Part shown: positions 557-937 of the stretch, piece after piece
How positions within the stretch are numbered: the stretch's first letter is position 1
How the letters are laid out: every line of letters begins with the position of its first letter
Assembly (NCBI RefSeq): GCF_032444005.1
Contig: NC_091289.1
Coordinates: 13,454,001-13,518,000 of the forward strand
Length of the DNA stretch: 64,000 nt
Reading direction: 5' to 3'
Source: Ranitomeya imitator
Lineage: Eukaryota
Notes under the pieces: generated by a model
Told to the model about the DNA's origin: nothing
What the model saw: only the letters and a program-made list of their open reading frames with translations
Database searches by the model: none
Made by a program: the position numbers and the translations under genes

Positions 557-937
557 TCACTTCTTGGAGCTCTGCGTCTTCTTGGGCAGCAGCACGGCCT
601 GGATGTTGGGCAGGACGCCCCCCTGGGCGATGGTCACCCCTCCCAGCAGCTTGTTCAGCTCCTCGTCGTTGCGGATCGCCAGCTGCAGGTGCCGCGGGAT
701 GATGCGCGTCTTCTTGTTGTCCCGGGCCGCGTTCCCCGCCAGCTCCAGGATCTCCGCGGACAGGTACTCCAGCACGGCGGCCAGGTACACGGGGGCGCCC
801 GCCCCCACCCGCTCGGCGTAATTCCCCTTCCGGAGCAGCCGGTGGACGCGGCCTACTGGAAACTGCAGCCCGGCCCTGGAGGAGCGGGACTTGGCCTTGG
901 CCCGGGCCTTACCGCCGGATTTCCCTCGTCCTGACAT
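557..937 (-). CDS. Histone H2A variant (H2A.X/H2A type 2-B-like core, short C-terminus KKTQSSKK), 126 aa, single coding exon
   Basis: ATG at 937-935 (context AACATGT), TGA at 559-557. Translation [33 protein letters not shown]...[17 protein letters not shown] is an unmistakable H2A fold. The ORF-track extension to 979 starts at GTG inside a predicted intron. Confidence 0.97.

Follow-up and report, generated by a model that had tools for sequence, protein, structure and literature searches.

Close to one end of the window, the 64-kb stretch of DNA analysed here, lies a histone H2A gene with no H2B, H3 or H4 gene near it; the surrounding genes are HMCES, COPG1 and H1-10, which encodes a variant linker histone. 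What kind of H2A such a gene encodes is the question that this locus raises, the initial annotation having taken it for an orphan variant with an H2A.X-like core. We conclude with considerable confidence that it is the frog orthologue of a single-copy, replication-independent H2A gene that has lain between HMCES and H1-10 since before the amphibian/amniote split. The gene, its 3' flank and its upstream neighbour are placed as follows.

557–937, minus strand: H2A coding sequence of 126 codons with the stop at 557–559 (open reading frame and Pfam H2A domains)
292–556, minus strand: 3' flank, probably 3'-UTR, lacking AATAAA, ATTAAA and a histone stem-loop
5144–7160, minus strand: last HMCES (SRAP) exons, the upstream neighbour (Pfam SRAP; tblastn to HMCES in orthologous loci)

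The open reading frame at 557–979 (minus strand) contains an internal ATG at 937 that opens an H2A of 126 amino acids, or 125 without the methionine, with S6, S16, S59 and G99 (in the segment LLGGVT) and a tail that ends K118-K119-T120-Q121-S-S-K-K. Pfam recognizes both the histone fold (Histone, PF00125, E = 4e-15) and the H2A C-terminal docking segment (Histone_H2A_C, PF16211, E = 5e-21), and solved H2A chains match at E of about 1e-72; the protein should form ordinary nucleosomes. The open reading frame list and the sequence agree with the initial annotation in its description of the mature 125-residue protein, its four residues and its TQSSKK tail, and likewise in the absence of a terminal SQ[E/D]-hydrophobic motif, since the protein ends T-Q-S-S-K-K.

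Proximity to HMCES, also proposed at that stage, is borne out by two open reading frames 4–6 kb upstream on the same strand that match the SRAP domain in Pfam (6717–7160, E = 8e-24; 5144–5500, E = 8.5e-8), beyond which a COPG1 exon lies at 16823–17218. An exact-sequence look-up found the identical 126-residue protein in 326 contigs and 335 collection blocks, 252 of these blocks with contigs longer than 1 Mb. In all ten of the places listed from the 335 blocks the order was COPG1 > SRAP/HMCES > H2A on one strand, and in eight of the ten an H1-10-type gene of about 215–224 amino acids was called on the opposite strand just past the H2A. The order HMCES–H2A–H1-10 is common to the 15 orthologous loci that we compared (L001–L015), with H1-10 also found in L014 by tblastn, and the H2A has its place between HMCES and H1-10 in 18 of 18 places listed. 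In Xenopus tropicalis, the locus tags of H1.10 and the HMCES-linked H2A are consecutive.

A word-based homology search returned bird, alligator and lizard proteins whose H2A part is 100% identical to that of the window, and a caecilian protein that is 99% identical, all of these matches being spuriously lengthened at the N- or C-terminus by their gene models. The form found in Xenopus laevis, X. tropicalis and other amphibians (P0123) differs at a single tail residue, TQTSKK as against TQSSKK, and its gene context is that of the COPG1 > HMCES > H2A > H1-10 loci. The HMCES-linked H2A is thus present in frogs, caecilians, a turtle, lizards, crocodilians and many birds. In rat, Tamandua, a tarpon (teleost) and a lamprey, no H2A was found within 10 kb of H1-10; the mammalian sample consists of these two placentals, the Tamandua search covered the whole interval from H1-10 to HMCES, and in the tarpon the next gene after H1.10 is TADA3. 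A whale-shark contig stops 1.7 kb past H1.10.

By its position, its length of 126 residues, its S6, S59 and Q121 and its TQ(S/T)SKK end, the gene at 557–937 is a member of this HMCES-linked group of tetrapod H2As. A maximum-likelihood tree of 27 H2A proteins, which has too few informative sites and was not used as evidence either way, united the group in one clade in only 48% of its bootstrap replicates. The case for orthology is therefore one of synteny, gene structure and shared residues. The gene cannot be called an orphan, since it is itself a single syntenic orthologue, 100% identical from frog to bird and annotated in Xenopus as h2aj.L. The other part of the initial proposal, a distinct non-mammalian H2A, stands: every syntenic orthologue retains the T-Q tail (TQSSKK or TQTSKK), the protein differs from the frog replication-coupled H2A, and the gene occurs in non-mammalian tetrapods and not beside H1-10 in two placentals. 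Nor did our search of the literature find a dedicated study of the gene, or any treatment of its tail sequence, of UniProt Q6INC9 or of the HMCES/H1-10/H2A synteny, so that 'little-characterised' was a fair description.

Comparison of the coding sequence with those of 15 orthologues gave dN/dS below 0.02 at dS of 0.21–0.89. There were 19–54 synonymous differences, and the only amino-acid change was the single S/T exchange in the tail; the remaining differences were serine codon-family switches. Canonical H2A tails vary among frogs, birds, mammals and fish, whereas the tail of the HMCES-linked H2A is constant apart from that one exchange. These comparisons show that purifying selection on the gene is very strong, and that it extends to the tail.

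Replication-coupled histone genes are defined by a conserved 3' stem-loop close behind the stop codon. The Rfam Histone3 model gave no match in the window at gathering score, none in 1–1400 at E up to 10, and no stem-loop in seven orthologous loci. A negative at gathering score is by itself weak evidence: in the lamprey control locus L016, the model found only one of six stem-loops at that score. Because five of six had been missed, a stem-loop consensus pattern search was used instead. In the lamprey cluster loci L016 and L017, the pattern matched 30–40 nt past each histone gene, and in a frog cluster (L021) it matched past the called H2A, H2B and H4 genes, 39 nt from the stop in the case of H2A; across the 64 kb of the window and the 15 orthologous loci of 20 kb each, it had no match. 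The HMCES-linked H2A, which has no stem-loop and lies outside any histone cluster, is not replication-coupled.

How its mRNA ends can be predicted in part. The 556-nt 3' flank present in the window contains neither AATAAA nor ATTAAA, so the mRNA probably ends beyond the window start; in birds and a lizard, the first poly(A) signal is encountered about 850–1010 nt after the stop. The flank has no similarity to the 3' flanks of other frogs, and its distal part, up to the window start, is filled by a tandem repeat (17–291) with a 39/82-nt period. A stretch of 91 nt with 79% identity is common to a bird locus (L002, 963–1048 nt after the stop) and the turtle locus (L001, 1444–1530 nt); it surrounds the likely poly(A) site, and the rest of those flanks could not be aligned.

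Upstream of the coding sequence, alignment of orthologous loci and the sequence itself delineate a histone-type promoter followed by a predicted intron in the 5'-UTR.

1101–1201, minus strand: core promoter module (sequence and alignment of orthologous loci)
1201–1194, minus strand: octamer ATGCAAAT, in the module
1176–1172, minus strand: degenerate CCAAT (CCATT), in the module
1147–1143, minus strand: CCAAT, in the module
1126–1117, minus strand: degenerate TATA, in the module
1109–1101, minus strand: GC box, in the module
1095–1088, minus strand: conserved GTCAGTGC motif (alignment)
1023–1092, minus strand: predicted non-coding exon 1 (alignment), its start placed at the GTCAGTGC motif
946–1022, minus strand: predicted 5'-UTR intron of 77 nt, with a GT donor at 1022–1021 and an AG acceptor at 947–946
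around 973–969, minus strand: CTAAC branch site in the predicted intron, followed by a pyrimidine tract (sequence)
938–945, minus strand: predicted 5'-UTR part of exon 2, with A at −3 of the ATG and an acceptor position conserved in other frogs

This promoter module is conserved from frog to bird: the octamer lies upstream of the gene in 15 of 16 orthologous loci, and in all of the sauropsid loci its spacing is fixed, with 26 nt to a CCAAT and a further 31–32 nt to the next. The splice signals (donor, branch-like site, acceptor) are likewise conserved among the loci of frog, turtle, lizard and bird, in each of which the GT donor falls about 170–190 nt after the octamer; the predicted intron itself varies in length, being 77 nt here, about 70 nt in birds and, in lizard and turtle, about 220 and about 325 nt. 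Transcription start, intron and polyadenylation are all predictions. Resemblance of the octamer/CCAAT promoter to S-phase histone promoters means that some cell-cycle regulation is possible. Between the promoter and the 3' end of HMCES lies a minisatellite (1642–2873) of about 62 copies of a 20-nt unit with 91% matches.

In an index of sequencing runs, 20 runs from eight studies contain the stretch, none of them recorded as RNA, and at most 0.66 of the sampled words were present. A spliced transcript of 292–1092 would be expected to give a share of about 0.65, coding sequence plus 5'-UTR about 0.41, and genomic DNA about 1.0; indirectly, then, the shares fit a transcript with a long 3'-UTR. 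The Xenopus laevis orthologue, h2aj.L, is among the abundant histones detected by mass spectrometry in chromatin fractions of egg extract, where its intensities, given in one table row, are of the same order as those of canonical H2A and H2A.X (PMC12092007) and may include peptides shared with other H2As.

Could the gene nevertheless be an ordinary replication-coupled frog H2A that has strayed from a histone cluster? The frog canonical H2A (P0124, cluster locus L021) has the same fold, G99 and 94–95% identity to the protein here, and both promoters contain an octamer and CCAAT boxes, as is typical for histone genes. The canonical protein, however, has Q6, V10, T16, T59, V87 and E121 and a tail with four more residues, and the changes from frog canonical H2A amount to Q6S, V/T10A, T16S, T59S, V87I and E121Q. 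The canonical gene belongs to a cluster, has an H2B as its divergent partner and is followed by a stem-loop 39 nt past the stop, whereas the HMCES-linked gene has no stem-loop in a search with positive controls, no H2B, H3 or H4 gene nearby and a conserved 5'-UTR intron by prediction. Furthermore, the orthologues at this locus in birds, lizards and crocodilians encode the identical protein, and canonical H2As differ between those classes. A stray cluster gene is therefore extremely improbable. Descent from H2A.X would offer another origin. H2A.X is required to have an extended tail that ends in an SQ[E/D]-hydrophobic motif, and its identity with the protein here was rejected for want of that end, but the motif might have been lost: S16 and G99 are common to H2A.X-type proteins (P0119), a possible target site for ATM/ATR-type (PIKK) kinases is present in the C-terminal tail of both, and the protein tree is compatible with any placement. 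Against this, S16 occurs in bird canonical H2A (P0115) and G99 in the canonical H2As of frog (P0124) and fish (P0097), so that neither residue is H2A.X-specific outside mammals and the label 'H2A.X-like core' was misleading. As read from the sequences, the marks of the HMCES-linked group are S6, S59, Q121 and the short tail; none of the three residues is an H2A.X character, the long H2A.X tail has left no remnant, and the locus is HMCES/H1-10 in every species examined. We consider such a descent very unlikely.

The name given to the Xenopus gene implies a third origin, true orthology with mammalian H2A.J. NCBI calls the X. laevis protein 'H2A.J histone L homeolog' (h2aj.L; UniProt Q6INC9; X. 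tropicalis XENTR_v10012791), and mammalian H2A.J is likewise a near-canonical H2A with an S/T-Q motif near its C-terminus, whose gene lacks the stem-loop and is active outside S phase (PMC5436145; PMC9526256), as we infer for the HMCES-linked H2A. H2A.J is, however, defined by Val11 and an SQK motif and reported as mammal-only (PMC5436145), whereas the protein at 557–937 has Ala11 and no SQK, and differs further in S6, S59 and T120-Q121. The loci also differ: mammalian H2AJ lies beside H4C16, WBP11, SMCO3 and ART4 and falls within the clade of cluster H2As (PMC9526256), whereas the gene here is on the HMCES/H1-10 side, where no H2A was found adjoining H1-10 in rat or Tamandua. In chicken, a gene labelled H2AFJ lies inside the ART4-side histone cluster (PMC6813082) and not at HMCES; with the HMCES-linked H2A located elsewhere, birds carry both genes. 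We give orthology with H2A.J only a slight chance. The Xenopus gene is like that of the window in its 126 residues, its HMCES/H1-10 place, its promoter and its predicted intron, and unlike it in the one tail residue; it is probably wrongly labelled, and in view of Ala11, the missing SQK and the different locus its name is best read as a label of similarity.

One further candidate relative was considered. Among the 120 homologues listed, S59 is found only in the HMCES-linked group and in a lamprey H2A, which was rejected as a relative because it is a canonical cluster gene and the lamprey H1.10 has no H2A neighbour. This lamprey canonical H2A (clusters L016 and L017) has 126 residues and an S-Q motif in its TSQAKK tail; S/T-Q near the H2A C-terminus thus occurs in several lineages outside H2A.X.

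The HMCES-linked H2A is built like the gene of a cell-cycle-independent 'replacement' histone; it looks ordinary but is unusually constrained, inconsistently named and essentially unstudied. We propose that it would be transcribed from its conserved histone-type promoter, with octamer, CCAAT boxes and GC box, and that a short non-coding exon 1 and the 5'-UTR intron would be processed to give a polyadenylated mRNA with a long 3'-UTR. It could in this way supply near-canonical H2A independently of S phase, to the stored histone pools of eggs and to non-dividing cells, a role that would parallel that of mammalian H2A.J with no orthology between the two. Accounts of how vertebrates supply H2A outside replication usually name H2A.X, H2A.Z, macroH2A and the mammal-only H2A.J; in non-mammalian tetrapods there is a different near-canonical H2A of replacement type, with protein and tail unchanged from frogs to birds. 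If the absence beside H1-10 in two placentals reflects a real loss, H2A.J with its S-Q tail would be a convergent replacement with an origin of its own in a cluster gene. Naming also matters, egg extract of Xenopus being a standard system for chromatin work: the HMCES-linked H2A may be one of the major H2As in the chromatin of amphibian eggs, misfiled so far, and with the name H2A.J in use there, findings may be carried over in error between frogs and mammals.

The tail raises a separate possibility. T120, next to K119, is the Bub1 site, and the invariant T120-Q121 removes the acidic residue beside it and creates a minimal S/T-Q motif. That this motif is an ATM/ATR/DNA-PK-type phosphorylation site is speculation from a motif match, which conservation allows. 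If true, ATM/ATR/DNA-PK would also read the Bub1 site beside K119, and damage signals would be coupled to those of the centromere or of ubiquitin on H2A. As a naturally occurring E121Q variant, with the change next to T120 and K119, the protein offers a way to probe the reading of the H2A C-terminal tail. The HMCES-linked H2A may form a variant class of its own, so far unrecognised and no younger than the tetrapods; that it is at once such a class, replaced convergently by H2A.J in mammals, the bearer of a dual Bub1/PIKK site at T120-Q121 and a major, misnamed H2A of egg chromatin is a combination that we think unlikely.

Farther along the window, an intact transposase open reading frame of 340 amino acids (22477–23499, minus strand) is of the Sleeping Beauty type of Tc1/mariner, with HTH_Tnp_Tc3_2, HTH_SB and DDE_3 domains, and a second, nearly identical copy with a truncated 5' end lies at 32947–33759 (plus strand). 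Short collagen-like Gly-X-Y stretches occur at 51284–52273 and 56016–57344 (minus strand), at the ends of long low-complexity open reading frames next to runs of N; these may be exons of a collagen-type gene.
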